This document shows positions 1-34,200 of a stretch of 64,000 bases of DNA, one piece after another. Position numbers and translations under genes: made by a program. Origin of the DNA: Botryllus schlosseri (lineage: Eukaryota); assembly GCA_051294905.1 (NCBI GenBank), contig CM119376.1, positions 25,172,001 through 25,236,000 of the forward strand. The letters run 5' to 3'. Position 1 is the first letter of the stretch; each line of letters begins with the position of its first letter. The notes beneath the pieces are model-generated. The model saw only the letters and a list, made by a program, of their open reading frames with translations, did not search any database and had not been told where the DNA came from.

Positions 1-91
1 GGCGCGAAATTCATGAATCAAGTGTCTGGTATTTTGATGTTTCTGATTTTGATATTCTGGCAAGCAGAACCGAACTACTGGATATTCTTAC

Positions 92-7200: not shown

Positions 7201-10200
7201 AACATGTCGGTTGGCAAATGTCCATGCAGGCCGCAAAGTGGCTGTGCTCAGGACAAGTGACTTCAGCTGAATTGAAAATACATCTATGATCACCGCGAAA
7301 CGTCGGTAATTTGCGTCTCAAAAATGGCACACATTTAACAGGAGGTGGTCCGGTTGGTACTCAAGTAGAGGTAGAAGTAAATCTAAAACATTCTGCTCAT
7401 TCACAAGCAGACTTGCCATTTCCCAGACATGCCAAATCTACTTGAAGTGGAAGTGGAAAATGAAAATTTTAAATGTTCTTGTTTGAGTAGATTTAAAGAT
7501 AAAGTAGATCCTGGACAATACATGGCATATTTTAGGTGGTTGGTTTCGAAATGACAGGGTGCATCTTTGAGACTATCGCAAAATGACTCACGCCACTACA
7601 AATTGACGTGATTTTCAAAAATGTATTACCACAATACGAGGTCTATTTCAGTAAATCCAAAATTGAAAAAGTAAGCAGTTGTGCAGAAAAAACTGATAAA
7701 TGGAATTGGAAGTAGTTTTAAACCATAACCACTCAAGCAAACAGTGTGAGTTGGCAAAACCAACTTTGATACTCCGAAAGAGCAGAAGTGCCTCGTCAAT
7801 GACCCCCTCTCACTCAACAAATTCTTACTTATGTTAGCCTCCTGTCTCCAGGTGTCAGGCAGTTCCCCTCCTTCGGCGCGACAATCTTCCGTAAAGTCCG
7901 AGATGACTCTTTCCTGCACCGACACGTCGCCCGCGAAAGCGCACAAGTCCAAAATGCAGTTTTCGTACATCGTGGCAGAGTCCGCCAATCTCTGGCAGCC
8001 TCTCATGACGCCGGTGGGATTGATCAGAACCCCGCAGGCTTCCGCCGCGATGGCTCTGTCTTCTGGGCCGCACACGAATGGCGGAGATTCGCTGAGGAAA
8101 TCGGCCATAGGGCCAACGCAGCTAAAAGAGTAATACATTAGTATAAACACGGATATATCTACAACTAGTCATGAGATCTAACTAGATATCCTTGGCACAC
8201 GTATCATTTATATGGTGTAGTAGCAAGGGTAGCCACCGTGAGTGCTATTTTATCACAATCCAAATTTTTCGACTGCAATAACTCCGCTTCCACAGGTTGG
8301 AATTGAGCCAAATTTGGTGAGCATCGTTTCTGCAGACAGCCTAACAATTTCATGGGGTGAGCAGAAAATTTTGTTCAATTTCTGTTTGATTTTTACGTAA
8401 TAAATCCAAAACTTTCTTCTCTTGTAGCAAAGCGGCCACTCGTTGCAACCAAATTTGGTGTGCAGAGTTTATAATAACCAAAACAACAATTTTATCAAGT
8501 AGCCAGTGAAATTCGAAAGAAAAAGTTATTTTTGAACACCCCAAGTGGTCAGTACTAACTTTTTACACTCCGCATATAGTAAAGTAGAAACTACTTTGGG
8601 GATATGTTTGCATCGGTTTTATGAGTGAAATTGTAATAAAAACTTGGTGAAATAGAGCTCTTGTATTGAACAGCTAACATATGTTTGAAAATCGCACCCA
8701 GCCTATTTATAGCGCCTTTATTCATTTTGTGTCGGTCAAGAATACGAACGCCGCAATTTCGGGATGAAATACCTTCGGTTAACTGCTAAAAGTATGAAAA
8801 TCGGCGACCAAATTTTCTTCTTGAAACTGATTACTTTGGTACATTCCAGATATTTTTCAGATCTTCCTTTTCTAATTCCGCTTGCAGAAGTTTTGATGTG
8901 TCTCAGACATCGCTACTTTTAGATGTAATTTAGTAGAAATTTAGAGCGTTCCTTCAACTCCACCAAGATTCAAAAGTGCGAAAATACGAATACAATTCGG
9001 GTGCCATTTTCTCATATCGGAAACGCGTTGCTACAGGACACGCGTAAAGGACTCACGTGTCGTTGAAACCAAGGACTCTCCAAGACTCCACGTAATTCTC
9101 AGGGTCGGTCACGACCTCTCCTGTGATGGCGTGGGTGAGATCGTTGCTGGGATCGTCATTGAAGTCACCGCAGACGCCTTCGATCTTTTCTCTCAAGATC
9201 GCCTTGGCGTAGATCCTCAGTCTAAATCAGAAAATTTACCTCAGAAACAAACAAATCAAGCAAATGTGTACATAACGACAACGTACAACGAATTTGGTAA
9301 ACCGCATTTAAAGCTAGACTGTGTAGAGACAAGGGTACATGTTTGATCAGACTAGTTGACCTCCAAGGTCATATCGATCATTCCTATCTCATACCGAATA
9401 CTGTGAATGTATATTTTCTGTACCACCATTATTGGTGTCTGTTTATTAGGTATTTCGGTTGGATGAAAAATAAAAACTCTCTCTCGCATTTACCGAAGTT
9501 CACTCCTGATGAGAGTCAGTAGAAAAGCTTCAAATTTAACATATTTCACCACATGAATACACTATTTGTTGTAATATTGAAGATATGTACTTCTAGACAC
9601 CTATTTAACTCAACTCTACCGTTATTAATATCTCAATTTACCTGTCAGCGCCGTCCCAATTTACAGACAGGCCAAAGTTGAAATGAGCAGTGAGGAACCG
9701 GCCGGACTTCGCCAATTTCATCCCGGACTGTCTGGTTCCAGTGTTGACTTGCTCGCCGTTCAACTGCGATGCAACAAAGACATTTGTCAACCCAAAATAT
9801 TGATAGGGGTTCATAATTTCAATTCTGCAGGATATTTCTAAATGTCTTTGCGAGTGTGCAGTCCTATAGTAGAGGTGATTGAAGGATAATACAATCATTG
9901 TTGGCACTCAAGTAGAACTAATGTCGTAAATTCCTACTCAAGTATAAGTAATAGTAGCATTTTTCAAGTGAGCGAAAGAGAAAGTATTCTACATTTCTAG
10001 GCCTTGTTTTGCCTAAAAAACTGAAGTACAATCGGAAGTACTCCAAAATCATAACAGCTTGAGTAAGTACCGCAAATGGGCAAAACCTACTTGAGTACTT
10101 CATAGTAGTAGTACTTCATAACTGACCACCTCTGGCCCCTACATGTCCTTCCATTAATATCACTGTATTTTCAGATCAAAGATTGATGCGATTCCTAATT

Positions 10201-13200
10201 TTCATTGTATCGTAATTCTAACAGTATTTTGGATCGATAAAATTTCTAATAAAAATCCTCACCGTCGCAATTGGTCCTTTATAAAATGACAGCCGTTGTC
10301 CTCTGAAATCCATGTGTACTTCTTTCACAGTCGAAACCCGAATATTTCTTAGCGGCTGCGCGTTGACCGCGACCACCGAGAATGGATCGAGGCCGCTGTC
10401 GGATTTGGAGCTGAAAAATGAATTCGGTAATCGTGAGGCATCAACTCGTGATTTTTCAGCGTATCAGGGAAAAAAACCATTGATTTGTATATGAATTCTA
10501 GTCCTCACTTGAGATTACACGACATATCTGGTTTGCCTATCGTTGCATGGCACTTCATTTTCACAGCTTGTCCTTTTTCTGTTATCTTCGGTTACCTTCA
10601 ATTCATTCTGCATGCCTCTTATTCGCACGTTCTAGGTCAAGGGGGCGTTTAATTGAGAGCCTACACCAAGTCGTTTCGACTCCTGCCTTTTCGTGTTATG
10701 TTAATGCTGAAGTGTGTTTAATTGATGAAAATGAATACACCATTCAGTGTTCAAATATGGAATCATAGCTATCATGCATGTCTGAAAGCACAGTTTACAC
10801 TCACAACATTCAATTCAGTACGGCAAGAGCACAAGCTCAAACAAGACTCGCATGTGCAAAGCTAATATAATTGATGCCAATTTGAGATCGAATATCATCG
10901 ACCTGACAGTATTGCTAAAGTAGACCTTTACCTGACCATGGTGTACGAGCAGATCCCTTGAGAATCGAAAGTGTTTCCGTCGAAAGTCGTGTAATGCGGG
11001 TCCGTGATAGCTTTGCACACAGCCCTTTTCTGTTTTAAAAAGCGTCATGACTTCAATTTGAGTCTACCAATGAACAGAAAACACTTACCCGCGCTTTCGG
11101 CACGCACAGCATGAATCCCTCCGGTGTTGTGCCGCAGTTTTGAGTGTCCAAGCAGCCGCCTTCGATTTCTTTGCAGACGAATTCGTTTTGCCCGCGGCAA
11201 ACGCACTCCTGTCTGCAGTCGTTACGACGAAACTTGAAACCTGTCACATAGAAATTACAATGCAGGAAGAAATGCTGCTATCCAGTCTCAGTTGCAACTG
11301 TCTGAAAGAAGACTAGGTACTTTGTCAGTGAATCGACATGCAACTAACATAGGATGACTAATAACAAAGAAAACAAGTGTGATTTTTTAAATTACATCTG
11401 TTGTTATAGTAAATGGTGTGGGTTACCGAGTGACCACGTCAATTTTATAAAAGTGATGCCAATCCTTTAATCTACTGCTTACCACTACTTCGTACTTAAC
11501 AAAATCTAAAACGTCAGTAAGTAGTTTAGCTTCAAAAACTGTTAAAGTATAAGAATAGATACGTTGAATGGCTATCTTCTCAACAGCGAAAATTTGCAGT
11601 ATATACTACGCACATCGATGACGGTTTGATACCTAACATATTAAAACGTTCTTTCTCAGCTCGTGCAACCGGTCAAAAATGAGAAAAACCTAAAGCAAAT
11701 GTAAACGGCAATCAACGTAAGCAACCCACAAAATCTGTGAAGTTATTTGTTACACGTGCGGCGCGCATACCTTGCCACACATAAAATAAGTTTTATCCTT
11801 GCGAAACAAAGCGGTACCTTTCACGTAATAAATTCCACCAACGGTACATCCACAGTTTTCCGTCTTCACGCATTTGTTGTGCGACATCGTGTAGCCGGCA
11901 GCGCACCTGCATCCTGCGAACACAACACGAACGATTTCCAAATACGAGATGAAAAACTTGAAAAAGTCGACGTACCTTCGACGCAGTTTTCTCCCAGCAA
12001 GAACGGCAGCTTTCGCTTGCACAGAGTGGCTTCCGGGTCGCCGCACGTGGGCTGGCACTGGGGCATGCATCGCACGTAACGGCTGTTGGCGGGACACGGC
12101 ATAGCTGAAATTGGTTGGGCCATGTTCAAAAAACGTAACGTAACCGAGAGAGGCGCCTTTGTGCCGCTCCAAGTTTAGAATGGGGATCATACATACACTG
12201 GGTCATAATGCATCTGTGACGGCATAGCATTGTTAAAAATATTCACCCTCACTTCCCATATTTTCGTCCTAGGTACACCTATGCCTCTAAAAGCAAGTCA
12301 TTATCATGAGAAATGATTTAATTTTTGAGAGAAATAACGACATATCGCTATATACTTTGGTATTCTACTAGCCCTGGTGTACAGCGGCCTGGTGCAGGGA
12401 TGATATATTGTTATATTCGGAGATCTACAAATTACTGTTATTATTATTATCAATTATATGGCATCGATGTGTTTCAACAGACTTGTGATGACAAAATCGA
12501 GTCATGTTTCGTAAATCATTGACCCTCGTTGCATCGTAACATTGCTTAATAATAATTTCTCTTTGATTCGATTTCGTGAGCAATGTGATCATTTTCCATC
12601 GAAGGGTACTGCAAGAAACAGTAATCTCTTAATTTCTCGGATCTTGACGGAGTGTTTTAAGATGTTATCACAATTTGATCAAGATGTACAGCAGAGTTGA
12701 AACGCAGTCGGAAAAGCTAAGAGTTGTGCTTTACACCTTTGACGTATAGTATCGTAGGAATGCTTTTATTGCTCGACATTACATATCTTACGCAAGCCTG
12801 ATCGCCAGGGAGACGGTTGCCTGGAGGATTCCAAACAATCGTGAACGTAGGAAGAGAAAACTCGATTCTGCATGTCCTCGTCTCCGTCCATGTTACACAT
12901 ATCAGCCACGCACACGTCGTACGCCACGGCAGCATTTGCGACGCTGTGGCAGTTAGCGAAAGGCCCAAGAGGATCGGTCAGGACCGAGCATCTCGTCTCG
13001 TATCCGGCACGGGCCTGATCGGAACATTCGGACGACCCGCTCTGCGTATGGCCACACCTGAAATACATCGAACGGTACAGAAAATGCACAGGAATGCCTA
13101 ATTCACAAAGACTTGTCATTACTGTTATCAGTACAGATCTTTATCTATTTCTTATTGTTAGGTTTACAGATCAGTATCTGTTGCTATCTTTTACACATCT

Positions 13201-16200
13201 ATTTGCGTGTCCTTTTATGCAATCTTGTGCTACTTTTAATTCAGTGCAGATGCCTCTTATTCACATGTTATAGACCAGTGGTTCCCAACCTTTTTCGACA
13301 CATCGCTCCCCTTATTAAGTTCGACAGAAATTTTCGCCCCCCGCCCTGCATATTAACAGTTCCAAAAAATAGGACATCAAAACGGGGGATTTATTCACCT
13401 AACTCTGATCACTAGTGAATTGACTTGAAAACCGGTTCCCGCGACTACTTTCCGTTGGGCTTAACTGATTTTTTTAGTCAATTTTCACGTATTATACACA
13501 ATAAGTCGCCTTCACATGTATTTTTTGCCGTGTGAATTAAATATATCTCACTGGAGGTTCTATCATATTCGCCCCCCTATCCCTCCTTTGGTATTTTCGC
13601 CCCCTTGTCCACGTTGGGAACCACTGTTCTAGGCCAAGGTGGGTGTTTGATTACAAGTCTATCCCGAGTCCTTTCGACTATTTCTCACCTTTTCATTTTG
13701 TCGCAACCAAAATTTTTGAAATTACTGTACTCGTGTCAAAATTTGCGGTGCCTCGAAATGATTTGTGACTAGATAGTAGACTGATAGACACAACCGAAGC
13801 ACTGGACAAAGCAGATGTCTTGGCAATGCCGCCACTCACTTGGGCAGAGAGTAGCCGCGATAGTGCCAGCTCTGAACAAACTGTTCCACATCTGTGGCGA
13901 CCGCTCCGTTCGACATTGTGAAGTCATTATCGGCATCGTCATCGTATCTTCCGCACAAACCCTCTACCTTTCCTTTCAGTTCTTTTGATACGGTCACACG
14001 CAATCTGAACAAACAAATTCACAGTATTGATACAACATAACTGCAATTCATACTGTAATCGGTAATATTCTAGGCCAAGGTATGAGTATTCCTAGTCGTT
14101 TTGACTTTTTCCTATCTTTTCATTGTGTCACAATCTTGAAGTGTATTGAAAGGGCGGTTTAATAACTTGATGATGATGATAAATTAACTGCTATTGAGGG
14201 AAGGAACGGCTATTGTCACACGAACCTGTCTTTCTGGTCCCACCGAATCACTAGATTGAACGGGAACTCGACCACGGTGAAATGACCGATTTCGCGGATC
14301 GTGATGCCTTGCACTGTAGACCCCGCGTTGTACATCAATCCGTTGATCTGGGAAACAGAAGAAAATAGGAATTATGGAATCGTTAATTTGGTAGATTCGC
14401 GAGTTTTCAGTTATGATATGACATCAGACGCTACAAAGATTTCCAGTTTGTAAGGCAAAGCACAATGTTGTTTGATTATTACAGTTCTGCTTCCATATTA
14501 TATAGCTCCCTAATCATCCGCAAAAAAAGTCAGGAATACCCACCCTGACACGACGTCCCCGTTTCAATTCCACCACAGTGCTGTCGCCGAAAAGCACTCG
14601 TACAGCTCTGACTCTCGACGAAGTTTTCTGCAGCGTGTCCCGTTCGTTTGTCGCAACGACTTGGAACTGAGGCGCGTCGCTCGTACGGACATTTCTGTTA
14701 CGACACGAAATATTCACGGGCTATATCTACGTTGAAAATCGCCGCGGCGACTTTACCTGACCAGGGTGTACGCGCACCAAGCAGTAGCGTCAAAGGTGCG
14801 GCCGTCAAAAGTCGTGTAATGCGGATCGGTGATGACTTTGCAAGTGGCCCAACCCTGAAATGGATATGGGATTGAAATCATTGTAGATAGGGTGTTATGA
14901 CTAACAAGTCACATTCACTTTTGAAGAGATTAAAAATATTATAATCTTATGGCAGAGATCATAAAGTTGGCTTACTCGGGAGAATGCTAATCGTCTGATA
15001 TATAACTGTTGTATAATGTATATTCATATTGAAATATTCACGAATATTTCTGGCTGACACTCGTCAGGGGTAATCATCAGCAACTAGCAGAGAATTAGAA
15101 AGAACATTGTACAAATGTACATCCATAATCGTATCAGAAGCCATGACATGATACGATTGTTGATATACATTATACAATGCTCTTTTCAATTCTCTACTAG
15201 TGTCAGCCGAAAATATTTGGATTGATTTCAATATGAGTATATATTCAATTGTATACTGAAGTTCTGTACCTGCAAGTAGATTTTCTCTATTATATTTCGC
15301 CTTAACATAGCCATTCGTATACCTGCATACGTCTCGTGCATTTGAACTGCTCATTGACTTTATTGCATCGTTGCGACGACGCGCAAGGACTGACGGAATT
15401 GCAGACGACGTCCTGCGGTCCGCGGCATTCGCATTTGACGTCACACTGGCTGTTCAAGTATTCGAATCCTGGAAAACAGTAGCGAATATTTGTTACTTCC
15501 CAAGAAAGTAAAAAAGTAAGTATTCTAGACAGTTCTACCTTGAAAAACTAAAAACAGTGAAGTAGAAGTAGTGCTAGTAGGGAAAATCTACTTGAGTAAT
15601 TTAAAAAGTGGAAATACTTCGCTACTGACCCATGTCTGCTTACTATAGACATTAGAATCAGTGGATAAATGACTAGATATATATCTGCTGATGACCACTG
15701 CGGGTTGGAGGTCAACAAAACATACCGATTTCTCTGTATTTTCCGTCGATGACGCATCCGCATTCATCGCTTGGCACACATTTTGTTCCGCTGAGTACAA
15801 ATCCCTCGATGCAAATGCATCCTAAACAAGACACGGTGAGTTGGTAAGAGAATATGGGGCGAGTCGTATCAAATATTACCAGTTGTCGATTGCTCAGCAG
15901 AATTGGACGATTCTCGGCATATCGAACCGTCTGGATCTACGCACGTTGGTTGACAGAGAGAGATGGGCGTCGCAGAGACTGTCTTGTTTGGTCCACACTG
16001 TTCGTCACTCCGCGATATTGCTGCGATATTGTGCACAGTTTTTAAACACACAAATCAGATCCTCGAAGGCTTTGATTTGACGACAGAAAAATACCCTACG
16101 GATGATACACCAAACGCCAGCGTTTGAAAAGTTAAATATGAAGTCGAAGACAGGATCATGTGTTTTGTTATGTTGGTGGTCAGGAATGAAGTAATGAGGC

Positions 16201-19200
16201 AATCAATTAGACTTTGCCTACACTTCTACCAAAGGTTTTTGAAGCAAAATTACTTACATTTTTACACTGAAAAATATAGTAAAGCCGAAGGTGTAGCGAT
16301 TGTAAAAGCGAGTTCCTCTCGCTTGATGAATTGATTGGCTTGATTACCAATTAGTGATTCTATCCGTTGTGATTATTATTTCCTTCCATGTTGCAGACAG
16401 TTCACTGTTATGTTTATTTGAATGAATACACTTGATTACTTCACTGCCATGGAGGTGACGAGTAACAAGGCCTTTATTGGCCATATCGTCACCTCCAGTC
16501 AACTTTTTATGTTTGACGAAGCAATCAATGTCTGTCTGTCTGTCTGCCTTTTTCAATGTACTGTGTGCATGTCGCCATAGTTATGGTGGCTGTTACTAAG
16601 ATCGCTTGCAATAAACGCAGCTCTCTCTTCAAAGAAGCCTTTGGATAGGCTTTTATCGCTTATATGAGTGAAATAGTCATGACAACCGAGGGCCACTGAA
16701 TATTGCCTCAAGAAGCGCACCAATTCGCAAAGACCTTTCGTCTAGGTCGCGACGACACATCTTTCGATTTCGACTACCAAAGTACTCTCACAACTCCATT
16801 TGTTGCAGTATACATTTTCTGTTACTCACGCAACTCCTGCAATTCGTCCAAGCAATCCTCGACGTAGCTCAGCGTGTTCCTTTCGACGTACGTGTCGTCG
16901 CGCGAGTTGCACACGTCGAAAATGCAGTCCTCCTTGGCCTTGTCTGGGCTCACCGCCTGGTGACAATGCTTGTAGTCGCCTTCCGGGTCGGAGATGACGG
17001 AGCATTTCTTCTCGATTTCCGCATAGTTCTCGGTCTGGTTGCAGTACTCGTCGAATTGACCAGGTGGCAAGGTCGTCATTTCGGTGCACCTGGACGATAT
17101 AAAATCACATATGTAATTCTAAATATAATATAATATATACATTAAATAAAATAAGAAATACATATTTTTCTTACCCAATCGGACTGAATTCATTCACCCG
17201 CCACGACCTCACAAATTGATCTATGTCCGTCTGCGTTAGTCCGCTAGGCGTCACGAAATCATTTTCTGGATCATCGTTAAAGTCGCCACAAACTCCCTCG
17301 ACTTTACCCTTCAAAGACGCCCACGCCATGATACGCAACCTGATAAAAAAGCATAACACACAATGACATCTGTCGTTGAATTTTGGCGAAATATTGTTAG
17401 CGCTGGGGAAAATCGAGTAAATGGGTGATTCTACTCCCAGCCAAGTATCAAGCTTCAAGTCGATGTTCAAATATCGCCTAATCTGATGTCAAAACAGTAC
17501 TAATGGCCTGAAAGGTTCGAATATTTATCGTTGCTTAGACTCTAAGCCTCAGAGGCCGCAAAGAGAATGATGCCAGTTACAACTTGCAAGTCGTTCGAAA
17601 TAACTACGTATTTCTACACTATGAGTATTTTGCAGCGCTTTGTTACCGTCACCATGAATATTACTGACTTTGTGCGAAATGTGTTTCAATGCTCAACAGT
17701 AGCTAGTCGAGGATTTGGGGCTCCAATAGTGGGAATACAGTGTTAAAACTTAAATTTTTCATTGAGAATATATGTCTCTTGATGTATTTTACATATATAT
17801 TATTTCCGTTACTCGAAAAGATGTAATGTGCAAATGCAAATTATGGTTTCCAACCCAACTACCATACCTATCGACACCGTCCCATTTCACGACGAGTCCA
17901 AAATCGAATTCGGCGATCCTGAATTTGCCGACATGTTTGATCTGGACTGGTCCAACTTTCGAACCGGGAAGGATTTCTTCATTGTTAATCTGAAACGTCC
18001 GAGTAACTGTCAGTCGAGCTTCAAATTATGATAGTATTCTCGCCGCACTTACCATAACCGAACCCCCAGGTAGGAAAACGAGATTGAAATCATCTCCCAC
18101 TCGTATGTGGACTTCGCGAACGTGAGAGACCGGGTACGCCGGGTCTCGTTGTTCGTTCACGGTGATAACGCGGAAAGACCTGGACACGTCGGCGTTCTCT
18201 TTTGACCTGGCAGTTGACAGTAAAACATTAGTAATGCTTTCCACGGCATCTTAATAGACAAGTCATGATCTCACCTGACCATGAGATAAGCGCAGGTGCC
18301 CATTGAGTCGAATCGGTTCCCGTCAAATGTCATATAATGCGGATCTGTCACGGCTTTACAGGTGGCGCGTCTCTGTAACAAACCAAAAAGAGATGCTACA
18401 TATATATTATACATACATATATCTCAAGATTCAGGAGCATTGAAGCAAGTGGAAAATTTTAGCAATAGACTAAAACAAATCAAATTCGTACTCGGACATG
18501 TTTGAGACATTCCCTCCGTCCCTCATCGTTCACTCTGCAGCGGAATCCCTTTTCGCAACCTCCCGTCTCCACGCACTGCACCTCTTCCTTCCCGACGCAA
18601 CTGCACGCCACCGTGCAATTTATGTTGTTGTAGCTGAATCCTGCGTGGAAAAATTAGGCTCGAATTTACTTTGACACAGCTAAAAAGGAAACACCAAACC
18701 TTTTGGAACGTATCTGCCGTCGATCTGACACCCACAGTCCTCCTGCCGAATGCATTCGTTACCGGACAAGATGAATCCTTCGTTGCACTGGCAGCCTGTA
18801 CAATATTTACAATAATTCACATTGACATCGCCATGATAAAATCACTTATGATACTAGGATATAAAGAGCGAATTCCCCAGACACTAAAAAGTGGTGATCA
18901 TCAAAGTAATCACTTAGGAGTATTTGTACAAGTAATGGCCTTAATTTGTACTTGATTACAGGTAGATGTAGCGATTCTCCAACCATGTTAAAACTACTGA
19001 GTAGAGAATAAAAGTAGGCAGTTTGGCTTTAAAAAACTAGGGGAGTGGAAGTAGTCTGGAGACATAACAAGGATTTTTTTTCTTTTATGTGTCCTTTGCA
19101 GAAGAGAGGAATTCAAGAAGATGAAGTTAACTAAAGATCAGGCCAACTTTCAGATTCAAGAATCGTCGTATTCGGATTTGAATAAAATCCAAGAATCCGT

Positions 19201-22200
19201 CACATCCCCTATCCATTGATGTCCACGTAAAGAAAATTTTATTCATTGTAAAACAAAACTATATCCCAAGATTTGACAACTCACCTTCCACGCAGGCGCC
19301 TACTATCCCTTCTACAGGGTTACTAGCCCGACATATCGACGTGTCTTGGTCGCTGCAAGTGGGTTGACAAGGAGCAACGCAGGTCACAAACTTGGCGTTA
19401 TCCTGGCACAAAACGGCTGCGAAAACACAAGAATGGAATACATGATTTGACTTTGCCTGTAGAACAGAGTCTGCCACTGTTTTCAAATAATTTAATTAAT
19501 GAGGCTTAACACAAAATACCATCACTATTGGAATCGACATTGACGAGAATAGAGCCTATATACTCTTTATGGACATTATTAGTTCTGACAAGGATGTTAT
19601 GGAGGAGATTCTTCCGCTGTGGCTATCCATCTAAAAATGTCGAAAGATAATAGAGAAGAGGATCTATATCAGTTGTTCTGAACCTTGCCGCTACGGCCCC
19701 CAGGGTGCGATATCAATTCGAAGGAAGCAGAAATACTAGGGGGGGATATGGGGTGCTGATGAAATATGGTGTATCAGTATACCATTATAGTTCTCATAGC
19801 AGTTATACTTTTAACCGATTGATTATTTGGACTTTTCATCGCGCATGAAATATATCTACAACGGGCAATATGTTTCAACAAATACAGAGGTCACAAAAAG
19901 TCTTGTAAAATGTGAGTTACATCCTTTTAGGCCGCACAGTCACCCTTAACAAAGTTTGATCACACTAGATAAGGGTTTTCTCAACAAAAAAATTTAAACC
20001 AAGCATTGTGATATTGCAGCAAACTCAAAATCTCACAAGCAAGCTATATATAATAAGTGTTGTCTTGTTTGGAGTATACTAGCTAGAGGTAAGGACCTTT
20101 AAGACCCGTGTTCCATGAATATACTCTTTATTTAAAGCGGCATATAAATATGCACCTTCCAGTTCCGGTTCTCTGAAGTCCAAGTCGCCAGGCGGTTCCT
20201 CATCAGCTACAGCCTCCTCCCGGCAGTCCTCGGTGTAAGAGGAAATCACTCTCTCCCTGAGCAACACATCGCCAGGGCTGGCGCAGAGATCAAAAACACA
20301 GTCGTCGTAGATCGTCTGCGGGTTGACGATGCCAAAGCATGGCGCCAACGGTCCGTCGGCGTCACGTAAAACGCTGCAGTTGCCCTGAACTTGCTTGAGA
20401 CGTTCTGGCGATTCGCAAGCGAGCTCCAGGTCTTGTACGTCCGATTTGATGCAGCTGGAATTCGAAAAGGAAATAGTAGACTAAAGCAGTGGATCTCAAC
20501 TTTCTGATTTTGTTGCGTACCAACAACTTGACCAAAAATTCAACTTTATTCCAAATGTATTTGGGATTATTAACATGGGCGTATCAGCAAATAGGTCAGC
20601 CGGGAAATTCCGAAACAAACACAGCCCACGAGCTAATCCGCTCCTGATAACACAGACCAACAAGGCCAAATTAATGTTGTAATTGGAATTGTTTCTTCTT
20701 CACAAGCTGATCTAGGTGGAATGCAACTGAGTCGAATGACGCCTAAAGTATTTATCCGTGCATTCGATGAAGACATTTCATCCCCCAACCCTAATATATG
20801 TCATCCCTCAACCCTGATATCCGTCACGGTCATCCCTCAACCCTAATAAATGCAAAACACAATAAATTTTAACGTTTATAATTTTTTGTGTGGTGTTCAT
20901 GGGAAATATTTATTGCTGTCATGGGGAGCACTGTTTCGAGCTGGGGCTTATATCGAAGAAGCTCCGACAATTCTTACATTCGAAACAATTGTGTTAACGA
21001 TCTATTAAAATTGAAAACTAAAATTTTACTCTGAAAAAAAAATGCATTTACTGGGTACCACCTGAAATGATTCACGTACCACTAGTGGTACTTGCACCCC
21101 AGGCTGAGAACAAATGGACTAAGGAAGTATAGGATTGTGATTTCATATTTAGAGCTCAGACTACCTTGACTAGTGACGTTTTTAAACATCATTAATGTTC
21201 ACTTGTATCCAAGCATATCCCTAAACCTGAAACTTTGTCTCTCATTTTATGATTTTGAAAAAACTGAAATACTATAACGCATAACAAGTGGGTCATAAAA
21301 CATCACAAACTTACTCTTGCGTATCGTAACCCTCCACTTGCCAACTATTCACGAACGTGGTAATGTCTGTTTCCAATTGGCCGTCTGGCTTCCTGAGATC
21401 ATTGGACGGGTCGTCGTTGAAATCGCCGCATAGACCTTCCATTTGACCTTTCAGTTGCGAGTACGCCATGATACGAAGCCTGAAAAAAAAATAGGGAAAG
21501 TGATACAGATGTCATACCGGTATGATTTTTTGTCACAGAAATTTACAGACAACATTCTCAAACTCATGTGTGTTACATAATAAAACAGTTTTGGAAATGG
21601 AAAATGTTGACTGCAGTTTTTGAGGTGAATCTTGGCCTATGTAAAATACTTTTTTTCTTTACTACTTCTACGATGTTAAGCCTACTGCTTTAGGAGACAG
21701 AAAATCACATATAAAAAGAGAACGCAACAACAGATAGCCTATCCTGAATAATATTGTATTTGATTGACCTACACAAGGAAAAATCTTATCGCATTAACAT
21801 TGAAAGTACTTACCTATCCACACCGTCCCATCTCACGAACAGGCCAAATGGAAATTCAGCGACAGTAAACCGGCCGACTTGACGTACTTCAATTCCGTTA
21901 ACGGTAGAGCCGGGAAGTATAACCTCGTCGTTAATCTAAAGAAAACAATGACGTGTGAAAACTAGATCCCATTTCTCATCTCTTTTCAAGAGACAACAAT
22001 AAATAAACATACCCGGACCACCGGTCCTTCTTTGAAAGACACTGTTGTCTCGCCTACGTGCACGAAAACTTCTTTCACGTGCGACACGGACTGATTCGCG
22101 TTGGGCCTTTGGTTGACGGCCACAACCCGGAAAGCCGGCACTTCGGAACCCTCCTTTGATCTGTGCAAAAGTTTCATGTTGCACTATATGGTTTGTACTC

Positions 22201-25200
22201 ATTTTTATTCGAAATCTTCTGAGTTCATCTTCAATTTGATTGCATTGGGAACAGAGCTGGTCAGTACCAAACTACTATTTCGGAGTACTCAAGTAGGTTT
22301 CGCCTGCTTGTACTACATACTTAGACAAATATGTTTTTTGATATCTTCCACTTCCACTAAATATATCCTTAACCGCGTTTGATGTAACAATTGGAATTAC
22401 AAATCTGATACCAAAATCTTAACTGTAGACTTTCAAGAACATAGAGGAAACCGCGTTACAATAGAATTTTTATACCCAAAAATCGCTCTATTTGCCAATA
22501 ATTCTTTAGGCCAACTACTTATTTTTTAGACTATGGATTTTTTCAAGTAGAGAGTAGTTTTACGGTATGTTTCCGTCATATTTACGAAACTGTCATGACG
22601 ACTGTGCTAAAAAGCCCCTGTATCACGGTAACTGAATACATTTCTGAAAATTCCACTAATTTGTAGTGGAATTAGTTATTTTGCACTGATCTCAAAAATG
22701 CACCTGGCAATTTTAGAAATAGGCCTAATCAGCTTTGATCGACTACTACAAGTCTGGTACGTCTCAACCATAATCAACTTTTTGAAATTACATAATAGTT
22801 ATTGAAATCCTGCTTTTCTTCTGCCACTTGAATTGATTTTGACGTGTCTTTGAAATTGCTACTTCTACTTGTAATCGAGCAGAAATTCACAGAGTTACTT
22901 CTACTTCTACTTGGGTGCCAACAATGATAACTTGGACCTCCACTGTGTCTCACTGGGCATTCAACATACCTGGCCATAATGTAAGCGCAAGTGCCCATCG
23001 AGTCATAATAGACACCATCAAACGTTGTGTAATGAGGATCAGTGATCGCCTTGCAAGTAGCCCTTCGCTGTAAACAGAGTATGGCTTCTTTAGGACAATT
23101 TCCTCAAGTTACCGACAAAGTTTACGTACCCGGACGTGAGGAATACATCTTTTATATCCGTCTGTATCGCGCCTGCATCGGAATCCAGTTTCACAGCCGC
23201 TGACGGCAGTGCAGTTCATCGTACCATCCGTGCCGCATGTGCATTCGGACGAACAATCTTTTGTGCGGTACGTAAAACCTGAATTAACAAGCGGGTTTGA
23301 ATACGATGCCGCATACCTATCGCCAGAGCTGATCAAAGTAATCACTGTTGGTACTCAAGTACAAATAGAATTAACGATTTCAGAGTATGTAATAAAGTAA
23401 CTATTCGAGGCCTAGTTTTGCCTGAAAAATCATAACCTATTCCTATACTCCCTGAATTAGAAATACTTGATTACTGACCAACTCTGCCTACCACATATAT
23501 CAGTGGGCATGGGCATTTATGTAACTGATAAAAATAAGTATCGGGAAAACATGATTCCAAGTAAATGGTACTGTTCATAAAACAGAGACTCTATCCGCAA
23601 GAAAAACCCAAATAGTTCAAGTTTTGCCTACTTTATGGGGTTGTAGAACAAAAACTCTTGCCAAAAATGAAAATACACTTTCGACATTATGGTATACACA
23701 ACCGTATGAGGTTTTACTAATCAAAGAACACAGCCGAGACTATGAACTTTGCCACTGAAAAAAAAACAGAGAAAAAAATATAAAAACAAATAAATATAGA
23801 TACAATATATAAAGAAATATATAACATAAATAAAAATATTTGCTATCTCACCAAGAATTGAGTCAATATAGCAAGCAACGTCAACCTACCTTGCTGTAAG
23901 TAAGACCCATCGGTGTCGACACAGCCACACTCAGATTCCGGAACACACTCCGTACCCGATCTCACGTATCCGAAATCGCAGATACAACCTGAAATCAAGC
24001 GCATAACAATTTAGTTCATATCCAAAACGAATTCACAATCCTGATACCTTCCGCGCACTCATCCCGGAAAGAATCGCCCCGTTCGCACCGAGATCCGTCC
24101 CGATCGGTACAGGTTCTTTCACATCCGTCGGTACAGTTCACAAAGTGACTGTTGGCCTCGCAATCAAAAGCTGTAAATAGTATGTTATACATTAGCAGGG
24201 TTGTAATGACTCGAGTCATTTTTTCAAAATACGGAAATGACTTGACTCGAGTCAATCTGTGTATTGACTCGACAGGGACTCGAGTCATTGCGCATGACTC
24301 GAACCAAGTCATATGACTCGAGACTCAGACGGCCAAGACCAACATTTGATTGTAATTTCGAAGAATAGTAAAGTAACCACACTATTGGGATTTCGTCTAT
24401 TGGTACTGGTACTTGATAATGTGACCAGAAACTGCTAAAATTAAGGACTCGGACTTGACTCGGTGGTGAATTGAAAGTGACGACTTGACTCGAGTCAAAA
24501 CTATAAAAGTGAGATTGACTTGCGACTCGGTGCCTTGTGACTTGGTTACAACCCTGTACATTAGTGGTAAAATCAGTCAGCGTTGCTACTGTAGTAGAAC
24601 GAACGCAGTAATATTTTAGTCAATTACGAGTAAATGTACCAATTTCCAAGACGTGCCAAATCTATTTCAAGTGGAATTAGAATAGGAGAGATCTAACTAG
24701 TGCTCCAGTAAGTAGTTTGAAAAGTAGATTTGGTCGAGGGGACGCATGATTTTAGGAGTTATTCGGAGTCGGCTGCTTTCGAAATCGCAAGATATTCAGT
24801 TACCGTGGTACAGAGGCTATTTCAACCTTAAAAATGCTGCAAAACTTCACAAAACTACTTTCTACTTCTGAAATGAATTATAATTAGTAAGCTGTTTTGC
24901 CTGAAAATCTGAACAGCAATGGGAGTATTTTAAAAACATAACATAGTTGGCAAAACAAATGCTTCGAAAATTATTTATTACTCACAACCTCTAATATTAT
25001 CACAGGGATTTGCAATTGGTTTCGATCGTCAGAGGTATTGTTATTTTCATCCAGTCAAGACATGCAATCTATGCTGCAATACACCAGACGAAACATGTTC
25101 TAGTGAAATGATAGGAGGATGCCGAAATGACCTTGTGCAGTTCATCAATGTAACAATCACCTTGGCCTATGCCGATATTAATTAGTGTTAAATGTGATAG

Positions 25201-28200
25201 ATACCATATCGACATTACTTAAGCTGTTGTTGTTGTTCAACACATACTTGCTCTCTTATTATTTCATTTATCATCTCTCCTACTTACTACAACTCATTTG
25301 TTCCATTCTCTAAACAAGTTCTCTCCTAATGACGCAATGAAAATATGAACTATGGTACGATATACATGATATGAACTAACATTCCAGATTGTCGAGTTTC
25401 CTCCAATCTTCAACAATAGTGACGTTGCTTTGTCTGCATTCTTCCACAAACAAGGCGTAAAGACGTTCCTTGAAGGTCAAATTGCCGTAGGCACACGTGT
25501 CGAAAATGCAGTCGCTCATGTACTTTTCCGGGTTGACTATGCCCAGGCAAGCCGAGTAAGGAGAATCGGGCTCCACCAACGAAGAACATTCGTTTTGTGC
25601 CCACGCCAATTCCTCGTCCGTGGAACACATTACTGCCGGGACGTCCATCACAGCGGTACGGCAACTATAGTAAACGAAGAGGCAGTCAGACTAGATGACG
25701 ATTACAATCTGATTATATGAAGTCAACACCAAGATGTATGCAACGAAAGATTCTATTGCTAGGGTAGAAGTAAAAGTAATGGCATAAACTTCTACTCAAA
25801 TACAATGAAAAGTGAAGAGTGTGAAAATTACTTTAGGTAAAATTCGAATACGGTAGGTGTAAGAAATACTACGGTCAGCAGTACAAAGAAGTAGATTGAA
25901 TGTCATTCTCCAGTTTTTTTTTAAAGCAAAATACATTTAATGCAAAATGATGGCAATGAACATGGGCATAATTATCATAGGTATACTTTGTTAGCATCAT
26001 ACCGGGTCTGAATCTAGTCTGAACACTACTTTCCGCTCAACAAAATAAAAATGTAGAAAGCAAGTAGTTTGTCTACAAAAACTGCCGACATAGAAGGTGA
26101 AGTAATCTATTAACGTAGTCGCTTCAGTAAGTAACGGTAACGGAAGTAGACAAAACCCATTTGAGTACTTCTAAAAAGTAGTATTTTGTCACCAAGAAAC
26201 CTCCCAATACTCAACAAAAAACCGAAGATTCTAGCCACTCAGTAAATAATACTAGTCAAATTTATTACGAACGTACGTCGATCAAAGATCGCACCTGGAA
26301 TGCGGCTCAAAAATACTCCTGACCAAAGCAAGACCGGAAAATAGTTGGGTGATTATAAAACAAGTCGAATTCACTTACTCGTCGTTGTTATATCCCGCGA
26401 CCTGCCAGCTGTTTACAAACTCGGTGATGCTATCAACCAGTAAGCCATCGGCAGTTACAAAGTCATTCGAATCGTCATCATCAAAGTCCCCGCATACACC
26501 TTCCACCTTTCCTTTCAGTACGGCCCAAGCCGATATGCGCAGCCTGCGACAGGGCAACGTAATAAGCTTGTCTGCGTTGACCTCGCAAGGACACTGCAAT
26601 ACCTGTCTTCTCCGTCCCATTTTACGTAGATTCCGAAATTGAAATTCGCGATCCAGAATTTCCCCACTTTCTTGATTTCTACATCGCTGGTGGTAGTACC
26701 GGGTTCAACCACACGTCCGTTAATCTGAATATATCATGTTTGGTGATACAGCACAAGTCAGAAACGAAGTGCTGAAGAACTCAGGTAGGTCTTGCCTACT
26801 GCATTACTCTCTAAAGAGGTCATGTTTTCAGCTATTTCCACTTCTACTTCACAATATTTAGTCACCAAGTACTTACTAACTTTGTACAGTAGTTTTGCGA
26901 TTTGTATTCTGGAAAGAAGAGAGCAGTTTTGGAATACTTTTGCACCACTCTTACGGGTGAAATTGTCATAAAAACTGGGCGAAATAGCCACTGTAACACG
27001 GTAGCTGCATGTATTTTCAAAAATTGCACCTATTCGTTATCATTTGTGATTTTGCGTTATTCGCAAAGATGCACACTGCCAATCCGAAAGTAGTTGACTG
27101 CTAAAAGTATTTGACCGCACGACTGAAACACTCATTTGGAACTATTTGTTTGAGCGCATTTCAAACATTAACTATCTATTTCCAACTGAAGTAGTTTAGA
27201 CATATTTCGGACATTGAAGCATATACTTGTGAGTGAGAAGAAATTTTGGTATCTCTTAATTATGGTTAAAAACAGCTACATTCATGCACCATATCGTCGC
27301 TCTGGAATCAAAGTAGCTGATGCCCATTTTTCAAATTATGAGATCCATTTTTAAAACTTTGGGAAAATCAAGTTTTTGTACAATTTTCATAATCATATCC
27401 TGACCATGGTTATGTTTGTCGCATTGATGCAAAGTTAAGCATGGCCAAGTATGGCCGAAAGAAAATTGAAACTTCGCAAAAACTTGTTTCTTCCAAAATG
27501 TGTGCTTTCTTGGAATTATCACACTAGGGGGAAACCTAATCCTCTAAATTTAAAGCTATAGTATTCTATATTAATAAAATGAAGTTGAATATAGAAGATA
27601 CCGACTGTCCAAATCAACTTACTGTGATTACACCGCCACGCTGCATGCCAACAGTCAAATCACTGCCAACATGTATCCACGCTTCCTTCACATGAGATAC
27701 GGTCAAGTTTGGTGACGGTTGTTCATTTACCGCTACAATACGGAATTCAGGAGCATCGGTGCCTTCCTTATTTCTGTCAGAAAGTTGAATTTAATAACCT
27801 GTTCGCAACACTGATTCTGGCGAGCAAATCTCAATTGTACTGCATATGATATTTTCAGCATAGAAAAGCAATATATTGCCAATGCGTGATACATGCAACA
27901 CAGCAGACTACAATGCAATGGACACTTACTTGACCATGATATAATTACACGTTCCCATCGAATCAAACTTCTTTTTATCAAAAGTCATGTAATGAGGATC
28001 AGTTACTGCCGAGCATGTCGCTCTTCTCTGCAAACGAAAGTAAAGAATTCATGTCGTTGCAGACAAGTTTATTGGCTAATGTGCTAATGATGACGTATAT
28101 GAAATGAAATGCACTAAAAGCGCTAAATTTGATAACGATATAGTGAATTAATTATTGATTACAATACTTTGATTTGATCCAATGAATTGACAAAAAGCCT

Positions 28201-31200
28201 TCTTTTGGCAAAAATTGGTGTGACGAAATATAATGATATAGATCCAGTAAAATAATTTCCAACTCTATATCTACAGTATAATCAACTCAAATATTATTTC
28301 AATCACATAAAGAGAGTCCATAGACCGACTGCCATTTCAGCCCCCATAATTGCCTACTTATTGATGCAATTTTCTCTGAGAAGGTATACAGAAGTTTCAA
28401 TTTCTATTTGCTGAAATGTGTTATACACTGCAAAAGTAATTCAAGCCACTATTTTATTAAAATTTGTTTGTTTAAGTTTAGATTCATTTCAAATATGAGT
28501 ACGTACCCTCGGTCTCTGAACACATTGGAAATAGCCATCTTCCCTCTGCTTACAGGAGTCCCTATTTCTAGCGCAGCCCCCAGGAGTATCGCCACACTGA
28601 AGCTCTCCGAGTCCAAGGCAAGTGCACGTTTGAGTACAGTCGGTAATCGCAAAAGTAAATCCTAAATCAAAGAGAGTTCTTGAAAACATTTAAAAAACTA
28701 TGAAGATATGACCATTACCTTTTTCAATATATCTTCCGTTTACGTTACAACCGCAGTCTCCACTTGCAACGCATTTATTTCCAGACAGCACAAAGCCTTC
28801 ATTGCACACACATCCTGAAAAGTCATAGTTTCACATTTAAAGTCAAGTCAGACATTTAGCAATATGGTATCAAAGATGTCACTTCCATTACATGCTCGTT
28901 AATCCCACCTGATTTCACATACACCTAGGACAAAATAACATATACGTCATCGAAAAATAACTAAAAATAATCAAAGACGAAAATATTGTGGTGAAAATAT
29001 GATAATTATCTGCCAAAGGTGATTAATGTCCCGAGATTGTCTAGCTCAATCATTTTGTGTTTTCACCACCAAACGCAGACAATTTTACTTCAATAGGATG
29101 GTTGTGAAATTTATTGTTTTCAAAGCATTACAATTTGTGTATAAACAAACCGACTTGCGGCGAAGATTAGTTATTCAACATAAAAATATGTGGCACAATT
29201 TATTTTGATATTTGCAATCGTAGTAATGAGATATATAGGCAACGTATTCAAACAGAATATACCTTCAACACAGGCTTCCCCCAGTCGATTCGGACTTCTT
29301 TCCAGGCAAGTGGCAGCTGTAGGATCGTTGCACGTGGGCTGGCATTGTTGTATACACGGGCTGTAAATCCCATTGGTGCATTCCACTGTAAGTGGAGCAA
29401 TATTATTGAGAAATTAGAACAAATTGCAAACTACAAATTGGAGCATCATAACATAAACAAATGACATACCAACCAGTAATAATAATTATGCTAATATGTG
29501 TTGATGTTATAGTGAAATCGGAAACCAGGACCTGACTTCACCACAATCTTCCAATCAACTAAATCTAATCAAACCAATCTTATTGCGACTGAAATTTAGT
29601 AAATGTTGAACAAAAAAATCATCCTATAATAATGATAACAAAATCTTCTTCGTGAAAAGTAAGAGTGACGTACTTTGCATTTCCTCATCCCTCCACATCT
29701 GAACAATCCCGCCCGCAAGGCAGTCATCGGCGTAAGACGAGAAAATACGTTCCTTCATGTCTTTGTCACCACCCGATGCGCAAAGATCGTAAACGCACGC
29801 GTTGTAAACTGTGATGGGGTCTTCGTATTCGTGGCACGCTTGGAACCGGCCATTAGGGTCGGTCAAAGCTTGGCAATCCGATTGATACTGAGCCAACTCT
29901 GTGTTGTCAGCGCAAACAGGTTCCATTTTTTCCTCTTCCGGAAGGTCTTGGCACCTGAATAACACAAAGACAAAATATAAAGATACCGTTATTGATTGAG
30001 ACTGAATATTATGTCAGACATTCTTGTAAAGAATGTACATAACATTCGGTAATAGATTGGGAATGATCACAGCATCATTGAAGGTTATTTCTGTTCTGTT
30101 CACATCTGCAGTACAAGTAAATATTTACATCTACAATCTGACTGTATGACAATACCAGAGAGCTAATAGATAATGAGTATATCAACAGAAGCACATAGAA
30201 TGTCAGACTTATAAGCCATTTTCCATGTTAGAAACGAGAATAAGGTTCACTAATTTGGCCTTCACATACTGTTGCATTTAAAATATTGAGTTAAAAGACA
30301 CATATTGCTTCCAAAAAATAAACAATTATGGTAGACACAACACAAATTGAAGAGATTCGTGGTAGTAAGATTCAAGTACAATGCTTCACAGAGATTGGAA
30401 TTTCTTGTAGCTTCATGCAAGTAACAAAGTCCAATACCGCGCCTTACCCTTCTGTTCCGTATCCATCCACTCTCCAGCTTTCAGCAAAAGACACTGCATT
30501 CATTTCACCGCCACTGGATCTCACCGTCATATCGTTATCTGGATTGTCATCCCAATCCCCGCACAATCCCTCTATCGTATTCCTCAAATTCGACCACACA
30601 GTGATTCTCAACCTGGCAATATGTATTGCATTATACAATTATATCATTGGCTCATTTTTGTGCAGTGTGTGGATAGTAGATTAACTCACAAGTCATAACC
30701 GTCCCATCTGACTACAAGACCAAAGTCGAAGTCAGCGACGAGGTATCTTCCGATGACTCGAATATCAACGCCATAAATTGAACTTCCAGGAATAACCTCT
30801 TTATCGTCGAGCTAGGGAATAATTTGAAATAACAATTTAACACAAGCAGAGGAGCGCACAAGAAAATACGAAAGAGGAACTATTTATGACACGAGCAAAA
30901 CAAGGATTAAGACAAGGAATCAGATGTATCTTTGAGTTTCTCATGAAAAACTGAAACTAACACAGAAAACGAATAAGACATAAGCATAAGCAATTGCCAA
31001 AATGAACGCAATCAGTCAAAATTCTTGTTAAATCCAGTACTATTTCTCAATGATACCGGTATGCAAAAAGTCGCTTAACATAGAAAGCAAAAACTAAGCA
31101 CAAAATAGAACTAGAGTGCCACAAAGTGATACATGATTGCGATAAATGCAGTCGGTAGGAAAAAATATATGGCTCACGATACATACCATGGCCTTTTGAC

Positions 31201-34200
31201 CCTGCTTCAAAACGAGAGTGTGTTGTTCACCGAATTCAATGTGAACCTCTTTGACGTGTGATGCACTCTTGTTCTCTGCAAGTGCTTCATTCACAGCCAC
31301 CACGGTAAATGAAGTTTCCTTCACTGCCATACGCTTTGACCTGCCAGGGATGAAGCTATTGTTAGCAATATTGCTGAAAATAATGAAAAAATCAGTTCAG
31401 TTTATTATTAAAATTTTGTCACTTCAAAACAAAAAATCAATCTTAAGACAAAATCCAACCGACCGTCAAAATTCTACCATTTATGTAATACAGCTACCAG
31501 TATAAAAATGACGGATGTGACAATACTTGAACTTTTCCACATCCAGTTAGCCTGCAACAGATTAGTATTTTATCATGTTACATTTACCTGACCATGATGT
31601 ACGCACAAGTGCCCATTGCGTCAAATTTCGTGCCATCGAAGGTTTCATAATGTGGGTCTGTGATGGCTTTACACGTCGCACTCTTCTGCAAATGAATTCA
31701 ACAACGGTTATCATGAAACGTGTGTGTGTAGTCATATAGAGAGGCATAATTGATTGCAGGTTGATCATCACCAAATATAGGATAGCCACATAAAATACCA
31801 TACTATAGATAGAGAAAGAACATATAAACAATGTTCCCTCTATAAGCTGCACAGTGCACACGTGAGCAATTGCGCAGTGCTGACACGCAATGTTCCCTCT
31901 AATTTTTGCCGAGTCTGCGTACACTCACCAACCGAGCGAGATAGTGTAATGGTTATGCGTCCGGCTTCTCGAGCGGTAGGTCGTGGGTTCGATCCCAGGC
32001 CGGTCATACCAAAGACTCGAAAATTGGTATCCGCAGCTATCCTGCTAGGCGCTCAGCAATCACGGATAGCATGGAGGAGAAAAAAACGGGGGCGCAGACT
32101 AGATGACCTCATGGGGCCGTATCGCAACTCCGTCGTCAAAGCATCTCGATGGTGCAGGCGAAAAAGAATATCATATCTCTCTCTCTCTCACTGCTCAAAC
32201 CCTTGGACAACAGGGCGTAACGACTAAAAAAAAACATCACTTCGGATTATTTTGATCGCAACTTGGATTTTCTGTGCGCAAGGATCATATCAGCGCTGCG
32301 CATTTGCGCATGTGCGCAGCTTAGAGGGAACATTGCTGACACGGTATCTGCGCACAGGGAATCTAAGCTGCACACAAAAAATCCGAAGTGAAAAAAATCC
32401 TTTTTTTTATTAGTCGTCATGCACTGTTGTCCAAGGGACAGCGCAGTGAGTTGGTGATTGCGCATCAAAATAGTGGGAAAATTGCATACGAATATAACCC
32501 TGCATCAAAATATTAAAGGGGCACTGCACTCTAAAAATGATGTGGCCTTAAATTGAAGGACAAAACGAAAAAAAAATTGGCCGCAGCCGTTTTCTTCAGA
32601 ATGCCACTATAATGAAGCTGCAATATATTGAAATTTCCACAAGAACTTCACGCTCCAGCATTCAGAGATTGAACTTTATATAGTTGTCAGCCGATGTTAT
32701 GAAGGAAATATGTCGTACACGACAGAAATAGATTACACTAGGCCCGATTTCGAAATGAATCTCCTGACTGAACATCTTACGTTGACCGCGGTTTCTAAAC
32801 CAACTTGGCGTGTACGACATATTTCCTTCATAACATCGGCTGACAACTATATAAAGTTCGATCTCTGCGTGACTGCTGAAACGTGAAGTTCTTGTGGAAA
32901 TTTCAATAAATTGCAGCTCCATTACGGTACGATGGCGTTCTGAAGAAAACGGCTGCAGCCAAAAATTTTTTTACGTCTTGCCCTTCAATTTGAGACCACA
33001 TTATTTTTAGACTGCAGTGCCCCTTTAACTCATACATTCCAAATCTCATATACCAGTTCCAGCAGAATATAGTAGTTCAGCTAAAATCAAATTCAGTACT
33101 AACACATACCAAAGTGGCATACCGGTACTGGTACTTAATTTCCTCTTATCTGTCACCGACAGTCAGAAATAGATCGGAATCAATCAGCAATTAAACATGA
33201 AGCATTACCTTCTGTCGCCCAATACATTGATGAAATCCATCAGGGCCTTGTGCACAGTATTCCATCCCACTGCATCCACCTACATCCTGGCAGCCTTCTC
33301 CACAAACACACTCCTTAGTACAGTTTTCATTCCTATATGAAAATCCTTTCAAATGGAAAAATATGTAAGCTTACTTTTTATAAAAATCCGATGTAGAAAT
33401 AGTTCTTGTCCACAGTTATGTGACAAATACCAAACTATACGACACTTTAAAATGAAGCATTAGGGCACGAAATACATATTTTCGACTTCATTTAAATATA
33501 CCAAAATTATGCAGAAAAATGCAAGGACACAGGTGTCACAACGCGCAAGTAATAGATCCTCTCGTCATCATCATTTTTATTATCATTCTCATCAATTTTA
33601 GATACTATAAGAACAGGAAATAAATACAGTGAAATAATTCAAAGTCAAGCAATCAAACTCCCACCGTGGCCAATAAATAGGCTATAGTACCAAAATGTAA
33701 GAATATGTTAAAATATAGTTATGTACAGTTGGCAATGTCAATGGGTACGCTGGGATTTAGATCCTGGAGATATCAGATTGGTTTCGAATCGAATGTAGGA
33801 TAAAATAAAGTATCAATATAGACGATAGATTCACTGCGCATTGTGCATGGCTAGTGGCTACCTATATAAAGTGCTTTCGTTTTTTCCCACGTTTTTGCGA
33901 CCAAAATTAGCCAGAAAGATAAATATATTGTATGACAAACTATACACAAGGAAAGAGGATCTATGAACTCCATGAAATTCATCCAAACTATCCCAAGTCA
34001 TCGCTGGTATCTCTCCTCAATGCTTAGCCTATTTTCATACAGGGATATCTATATGTCGATCCTTGTTTTCACACCATAATGTTTACAAGCTAAAATTAGA
34101 TTATTCATTGTGGATTGATCTATTAGGGAACAGGACTTTAGATTAGAAAAATACATATATATGACCATTGAGTTACTCAGATCATACCGACTACAGAGAG

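Follow-up and report, generated by a model that had tools for sequence, protein, structure and literature searches.

Can the Asp-Pro bond at the start of an FCGBP-type VWD domain still break by itself when the glycine of the GDPH autocleavage motif is replaced by threonine, and how does such a replacement come to stand six times in one protein? These questions are raised by a stretch of 64,000 nucleotides from Botryllus schlosseri (NCBI GenBank assembly GCA_051294905.1, contig CM119376.1, positions 25,172,001 to 25,236,000), which we call the window. Its minus strand carries what is predicted to be a single intact multi-exon FCGBP/zonadhesin-like gene, extending beyond position 1 of the window, whose predicted product is secreted, FCGBP/zonadhesin-like and built of nine or more D assemblies (VWD-C8-TIL-TILa) in tandem. 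Translation of the reverse complement gives six consecutive VWD domains that start C-K-A-[IV]-T-D-P-H-Y. The six motifs, with domains VWD1 to VWD9 belonging to modules M1 to M9, are as follows.

31650 to 31661, minus strand: TDPH motif of VWD2 (M2), Thr codon ACA
27992 to 28003, minus strand: TDPH motif of VWD3 (M3), Thr codon ACT
23032 to 23043, minus strand: TDPH motif of VWD4 (M4), Thr codon ACT
18337 to 18348, minus strand: TDPH motif of VWD5 (M5), Thr codon ACA
14819 to 14830, minus strand: TDPH motif of VWD6 (M6), Thr codon ACC
10994 to 11005, minus strand: TDPH motif of VWD7 (M7), Thr codon ACG

Minus-strand translation bore out the sites, coordinates and Thr codons given in an earlier reading of this DNA (the original prediction). 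That reading gave each stretch as TDPHY; the coordinates are right, but the 12 bases encode TDPH, and the Tyr codon follows directly outside them at all six sites. A six-frame scan for VWD-start motifs found nine VWD starts, all on the minus strand, and agreed with the original prediction that VWD1 (SGSH, motif near 39760), VWD8 (GSTH, near 5440) and VWD9 (GNGH, near 1230) are without the Asp-Pro bond. Over the six frames of the window DPH occurs eight times and TDPH six times, the latter only at the homologous VWD sites, and GDPH has no occurrence in any frame. The motif falls within positions 1-28 of the Pfam VWD profile (PF00094). The Asp-Pro-His of the six modules falls in the beta1-beta2 turn at the VWD start, as in GDPH autocleavage sites, and the residue before Asp (position -1), which is Gly at GDPH sites, is Thr in every one of the six.

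The TDPH modules stem from an old module lineage. Pairwise identity among them is 36-49%, synonymous differences are saturated (pS 0.7-0.9) and dN is approximately 0.5-0.7. Sixty of the 331 ungapped columns (18%) are invariant; 16 of these are Cys, and the T, D, P and H of the motif are included, which upholds the claim that Thr was conserved while silent sites diverged. Because silent sites are saturated and Thr is written with four codons, recent gene conversion cannot explain the six identical motifs and was ruled out as their source. On this pattern, the Thr site is judged to be under purifying selection. The sixfold recurrence of TDPH is thus read neither as chance nor as six separate events: a single founder module is predicted to have been duplicated and its motif then conserved. 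The independence of the six sites, as distinct from their presence, had been overstated in the original prediction, since the six modules form one clade in the tree described below.

Several lines of evidence bear on whether these sites would cleave. Exon a, with which each module begins, aligns residue for residue and without gaps with the GDPH starts of FCGBP domains D1-D5, for which solved structures exist, and several FCGBP chains in the PDB begin at Pro, that is, they are cleaved. The motif is therefore found, as had been claimed, in FCGBP-type VWDs at exactly the GDPH position, and the pattern common to exon a and FCGBP D1-D5 is C-x-A-x-[G/T]-DPHY-x-TFDG-x-x-[YF]-D-x-[MQ]-G-T-C. In FCGBP the tether is formed by C472-C611, the latter 134 residues after D477 (PMC8267560). 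All six modules have a Cys at D-5 and the Cys of an EGxCG sequence 130-132 residues after Asp, positions at which a putative disulfide would tether beta1; a Cys is also present at H+15. At H+12, where FCGBP D10 has Q4094, the modules carry M, T or Q, of which M and Q are also seen in FCGBP domains that are cleaved. We considered Met at H+12 as a sign of lost activity and rejected it, since the cleaved FCGBP domains D1-D3 also carry Met.

FCGBP D10 is no longer cleaved when it carries D->A, D->N or H->N and is cleaved less with Q4094A/E; the cut makes the domain more stable (PMC10880436). Asp, Pro, His and the tethering Cys are invariant in the six modules and the hydrophobic frame of the turn is preserved. 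The flanking modules M1, M8 and M9, which are predicted to be unable to cleave, have lost D, P or both, which suggests that an unused Asp-Pro does not persist. We think it somewhat probable that the TDPH modules self-cleave at Asp-Pro. The original prediction had proposed self-cleavage, and the proposal stays plausible given that the Asp and His required in FCGBP are invariant, as are Pro and the tethering Cys. By the mechanism known from FCGBP, the Asp side chain would attack its own carbonyl, the Asp-Pro bond would break via a cyclic anhydride, and the anhydride would then be hydrolysed. The fragments would remain linked through one disulfide per VWD, each domain being stabilised by the cut, and reduction would split the protein into pieces of about 45 kDa.

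How exceptional is the Thr? A profile of the six C8 exons, searched against 1.84 billion representative proteins, yielded 946 hits, and the counts in this paragraph and the next refer to the best 150 of these 946. Those that were looked up are named IgGFc-binding protein-like or zonadhesin-like and come from fishes, sharks, reptiles, amphibians and lampreys. Whole modules are 32-36% identical to the best full-length hits, which are annotated vertebrate FCGBP/zonadhesin-like proteins. Among the 364 VWD starts of the form xDPH, the -1 residue is Gly in 340 (93%), Asn in 18 and Thr in two, with S, A, V and D once each. The two Thr cases are one VWD each in proteins of the ascidian Clavelina lepadiformis and of Lampetra planeri, and no protein with several TDPH sites was present. 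Annotated proteomes seem to lack the window gene and its orthologues, and a literature search found no description of a TDPH VWD variant. The individual TDPH sites (P0128:783, P0151:1031 (Clavelina lepadiformis), P0048:1103 (Lampetra planeri)) are single TDPH VWDs beside GDPH VWDs, in proteins that are otherwise different, the Clavelina protein having extra N-terminal repeat regions.

Seventeen of the 18 Asn cases belong to one coherent module type of vertebrate FCGBP-like proteins, with the context CRVHNDPHY (G[IV]CRVHNDPHY[ND]TFD...). Its carriers include P0004, P0006, P0008, P0009 and P0017, of which P0004 and P0017 are from a shark and a turtle. This NDPH type, found in shark, turtle and caecilian FCGBP-like proteins, is a second conserved lineage without Gly at the same position; it differs from the window modules in having Asn rather than Thr and in belonging to vertebrates, and it is apparently as uncharacterised as TDPH. 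Conserved non-Gly residues at -1 in nature, of which it is an example, count in favour of cleavage without Gly. Thr at -1 is on these data rare rather than unique, and there are conserved non-Gly lineages.

Other facts weigh against cleavage of TDPH. The predominance of Gly among xDPH sites argues that Gly matters. In the crystal structure of a cleaved FCGBP domain the Gly-Asp bond is cis, and in simulations the Asp carboxylate reaches attack distance only in the cis form, although the authors leave open whether that form precedes cleavage (PMC10880436). Before Asp, a beta-branched Thr accommodates a cis bond much less readily than Gly does, and Thr could therefore slow or block the reaction. 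It is accordingly conceivable, but in our judgement unlikely, that TDPH is cleavage-dead or strongly slowed: Thr would disfavour the cis X-Asp bond that brings the nucleophile close (PMC10880436), the six modules would stay intact chains, and D-P-H would be kept only for the beta1-beta2 turn and its hydrogen bonds. Context evidently matters, as recombinant MUC2 D4 can stay uncleaved despite its GDPH (PMC10880436), and the residue at -2 hints at an altered turn, being I or V throughout the window-module clade but in only 16 of 338 GDPH sites.

A dead site is harder to reconcile with the invariance of Asp, Pro and His across modules whose silent sites are saturated. The tethering cysteines, which serve mainly to keep the chain joined once it is cut, have been retained, and in the non-cleaving VWDs of the same protein an idle Asp-Pro has decayed, as would be expected. 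A further hint comes by analogy from the inter-alpha-inhibitor heavy chains (ITIHs). The only ITIHs named as GDPH proteins are ITIH3, 5 and 6 (PMC10880436), whereas ITIH1 and ITIH2 are coupled through a C-terminal Asp according to work cited in PMC8267560. The coupling of these two proteins, not listed as GDPH proteins, hints that non-Gly sites can react and suggests cleavage without Gly.

The history of the Thr was traced through related loci. Word-indexed searches with exon-sized queries matched 2 and 5 short fragments. One locus, L002 (Logan SRR10746997), holds the first two modules of an apparent orthologous gene in a diverged relative; its VWD1 reads GGPH (L002:2294) where the window has SGSH, and its VWD2, best matched by window M2, reads ADPH (L002:8410, Ala codon GCT) where the window has TDPH. 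In the same locus TIL1, TIL2 and TILa fall within one unbroken tblastn match (11332-11859), a sign of probable intron loss compared with the window. L010 (Logan SRR25569774) carries a complete module with TDPHF, and L009, a TARA Oceans metagenome contig, is 80% identical to exon a of M5 and carries TDPHY.

In a maximum-likelihood tree of 40 VWD-C8 segments, for which L009 was too short to be placed, a single clade, supported at 100/99, unites the six window modules, the second module of L002 (L002_M2) and L010, and within it L002_M2 is the sister of window M2 (94/41). Closest outside the clade, though less well supported, are the two Clavelina VWDs. The Clavelina TDPH VWD is sister to a group made up of a Clavelina GDPH VWD and the window clade (84/94), and the Lampetra planeri TDPH VWD lies elsewhere in the tree. 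Thr is present in seven of the eight clade members in the tree and in L009; the remaining member, L002_M2, has Ala (GCT, against ACA in window M2), the step from Thr to Ala taking one base change. Among the nine sampled sites of the TDPH-module lineage there is no reversion to Gly. The simplest scenario for these data is that in a founder module the Gly of GDPH changed to Thr by two base changes, probably via Ala or Ser, and that duplication of the eight-exon cassette followed, earlier than the separation from at least one other species. Purifying selection would afterwards have kept a small residue at -1, with one change from Thr to Ala.

Does the Thr then carry any meaning of its own? It may have been a founder substitution, replaceable by any small residue and spread by module duplication, which we hold to be possible, if clearly short of probable. 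That explanation is compatible with self-cleavage, for it concerns the origin of Thr and not the reaction. The single origin of the modules, the Ala in the relative's orthologous M2 and the presence of S, A, V, D and N at -1 elsewhere all accord with it. It sits less easily with an invariant -1 site, among the 18% most constrained columns, in six such diverged paralogues, with the retention of Thr in L010 and in the TARA contig, and with the failure of any sampled site to return to Gly. The original prediction would have been undermined by free substitution of Thr in close orthologues; this was borne out in part, by the ADPH of L002_M2, while TDPH is retained in three other sampled relatives. 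The constraint at -1 looks like one for a small residue, Gly not being needed, rather than for Thr only.

These sites matter for the role of Gly in GDPH. The one high-resolution structure of a cleaved domain has a cis Gly-Asp bond, simulations point to the cis form as the driver of the reaction, and the paper reports no Gly mutant (PMC10880436). A lineage that kept Thr for a very long time, once Ala, while the rest of the site stayed unchanged offers a natural experiment: it could reveal a need for Gly and its cis bond, or show that Asp-Pro-His suffices in the right fold. The non-Gly forms, TDPH here and NDPH in FCGBP-like proteins of vertebrates, represent conserved lineages rather than noise from sequencing.

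The original prediction went further and proposed a multivalent covalent cross-linker. Each TDPH site would cleave, and a glycan hydroxyl or an amine would trap its Asp anhydride, as happens in the inter-alpha-inhibitor heavy chains, making the protein a six-valent cross-linker of matrix or mucus. The chemistry itself is established, ITIH3 being esterified to chondroitin sulfate (PMC8267560), and each chain offers six potential sites. One may also speculate that a cleavage delayed by Thr until after secretion would form the anhydride where partners are present. FCGBP, the closest characterised protein, speaks against the proposal. It too was once thought to cross-link mucus via anhydrides, but all its GDPH sites are cleaved early, in the endoplasmic reticulum; the anhydride is found hydrolysed, with Asp recovered as a free carboxylate; and no covalent partner was detected, the protein being mostly not bound to MUC2 (PMC8267560). 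In FCGBP structures the new Asp is buried, and cleavage acts to stabilise the domain (PMC10880436, PMC11796319). The window modules have conserved tethering cysteines and a post-cut sequence, PHY-x-TFDG, that is FCGBP-like. The corresponding ITIH sequence is presumably PHFII, a form from which the window sequence differs. The original prediction also pointed to a putative D-T-D-P-H site in ITIH1 as a precedent. We regard a six-valent cross-linker as very improbable, and a delay of cleavage by Thr past secretion would be the one circumstance to raise its chances.

Scarcely better founded in our estimation, and quite improbable in its own right, is a version with latent sites, in which the X-Asp bond would rarely be reactive in the endoplasmic reticulum, cleavage would come only after secretion, triggered by pH, calcium or force, and the anhydride would be captured by glycans of a mucus net or tunic, giving a timed cross-linker unlike FCGBP. 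In a more remote variant the Thr hydroxyl could take part in the chemistry through an N-to-O acyl shift, the reaction that cuts SEA and GPS domains.

The architecture of the gene was established from a repeated exon set defined by mutually matching stop-to-stop frames on the minus strand. Splice-site analysis gave eight exons per module (VWD a-d, C8, TIL1, TIL2 and TILa), with splice junctions that are all GT-AG and intron phases of 2,0,2,2,1,1,1,0; introns of approximately 57-63 bases occur in the gene and, like the ascidian outgroup in the tree, fit a sea squirt. The exons of M5 match, in order, Pfam VWD (PF00094, both profile ends), C8 (PF08742), TIL (PF01826) and TILa (PF12714), with VWD and C8 scoring above the gathering cut-offs and TIL and TILa, as single-exon fragments, below them. 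The VWD-C8-TIL-TILa order recurs in all modules. When spliced, M2-M6 give clean frames of 393-403 residues without a stop, and M7 without its last exon gives 347 residues without a stop. Complete D assemblies in tandem are joined directly at phase-0 exon borders, no mucin PTS region separating them, and because a module both starts and ends in phase 0, it forms a cassette able to duplicate in tandem. The modules are listed here.

33194 to 39781, minus strand: module M1 (VWD1, SGSH) with C8, TIL and TILa exons, no Asp-Pro
28507 to 31685, minus strand: module M2, eight exons, 398 residues, no stop
23130 to 28027, minus strand: module M3, eight exons, 397 residues
18492 to 23067, minus strand: module M4, eight exons, 403 residues
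15323 to 18372, minus strand: module M5, eight exons, 394 residues, Pfam VWD, C8, TIL and TILa
11089 to 14854, minus strand: module M6, eight exons, 393 residues
6373 to 11029, minus strand: module M7, VWD a-d, C8, TIL1 and TIL2 giving 347 residues
6714 to 6373, minus strand: open frame holding the TILa exon of M7, 3' boundary of the exon approximate
1683 to 5487, minus strand: module M8 (VWD8, GSTH), no Asp-Pro
1 to 1266, minus strand: start of module M9 (VWD9, GNGH), running off the window

One junction departs from the common scheme. At the TIL2/TILa junction of M7 (window 6660-6719) the top-scoring splice has phase 0, with a few extra residues (…GKYHK|NAESFYTEGC…), whereas the remaining five modules have phase 1 at this junction. 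The difference reflects either intron sliding or a miscalled splice.

FCGBP of human and mouse (PDB 8rde, 8r0t, 8qci) likewise consists of tandem VWD-C8-TIL-E/TILa assemblies. It shares with the window protein the spacing of the tether cysteines and a run of cleavable repeats followed by two VWDs without the motif, which in FCGBP are the two nearest the C-terminus (PMC11796319). The window protein differs in having Thr at -1 and I/V at -2 in its six cleavable-type modules, and in that its first VWD is also without the motif. When orthology to vertebrate FCGBP was tested, the window modules formed a clade of their own, nearest to the Clavelina VWDs and outside vertebrate FCGBP, and the window protein is classified, by this placement and the 32-36% identity, as FCGBP-like, not FCGBP. 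Zonadhesin and zonadhesin-like proteins of fishes, reptiles and lampreys, which share this module type, provide the best full-length matches; their sites read GDPH, except for one module type with NDPH, and they show no evident orthology to the window gene. The window protein is thus a new and unannotated addition to a well-known family of secreted mucus and matrix proteins and, the -1 variant apart, an ordinary one.

More distant systems share parts of this design. MUC2 D4, MUC5AC, RGM, BMPER and SUSD2 have, like the window protein, an Asp-Pro-His core in the VWD beta1-beta2 turn (PMC10880436), but each has a single site with Gly at -1, and some are without the tether disulfide. The ITIHs cleave Asp-Pro in a VWD-like beta-sandwich, with GDPH in ITIH3, 5 and 6 (PMC10880436). 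Their Asp passes to chondroitin sulfate and the propeptide downstream of it is set free, while the window protein is FCGBP-like after the cut.

A scan of JGI metagenomes for TDPHYxTFDG returned four contigs, which were set aside as they carry an unrelated eukaryotic gene with no other exon like those of the window modules. In that gene (sites L005:7670-7698, L008:8411-8439, L006:2069-2097 and L007:727-755) the sequence CCQ[AS]ITDPHY[IV]TFDG is followed directly by an intron, and TDPH is kept in two diverged versions (GC 0.41 and 0.46).

Short repeats occur in the introns of the window gene and upstream of it, where they were seen as pseudo-protein matches between intron frames. They include the pairs 10014-10094 and 1542-1622, 7687-7800 and 1541-1654, 26935-27036 and 8603-8704, 15067-15153 and 6138-6224, and 47437-47493 and 6333-6389, as well as 59757-60094, and they are probably interspersed repeats.

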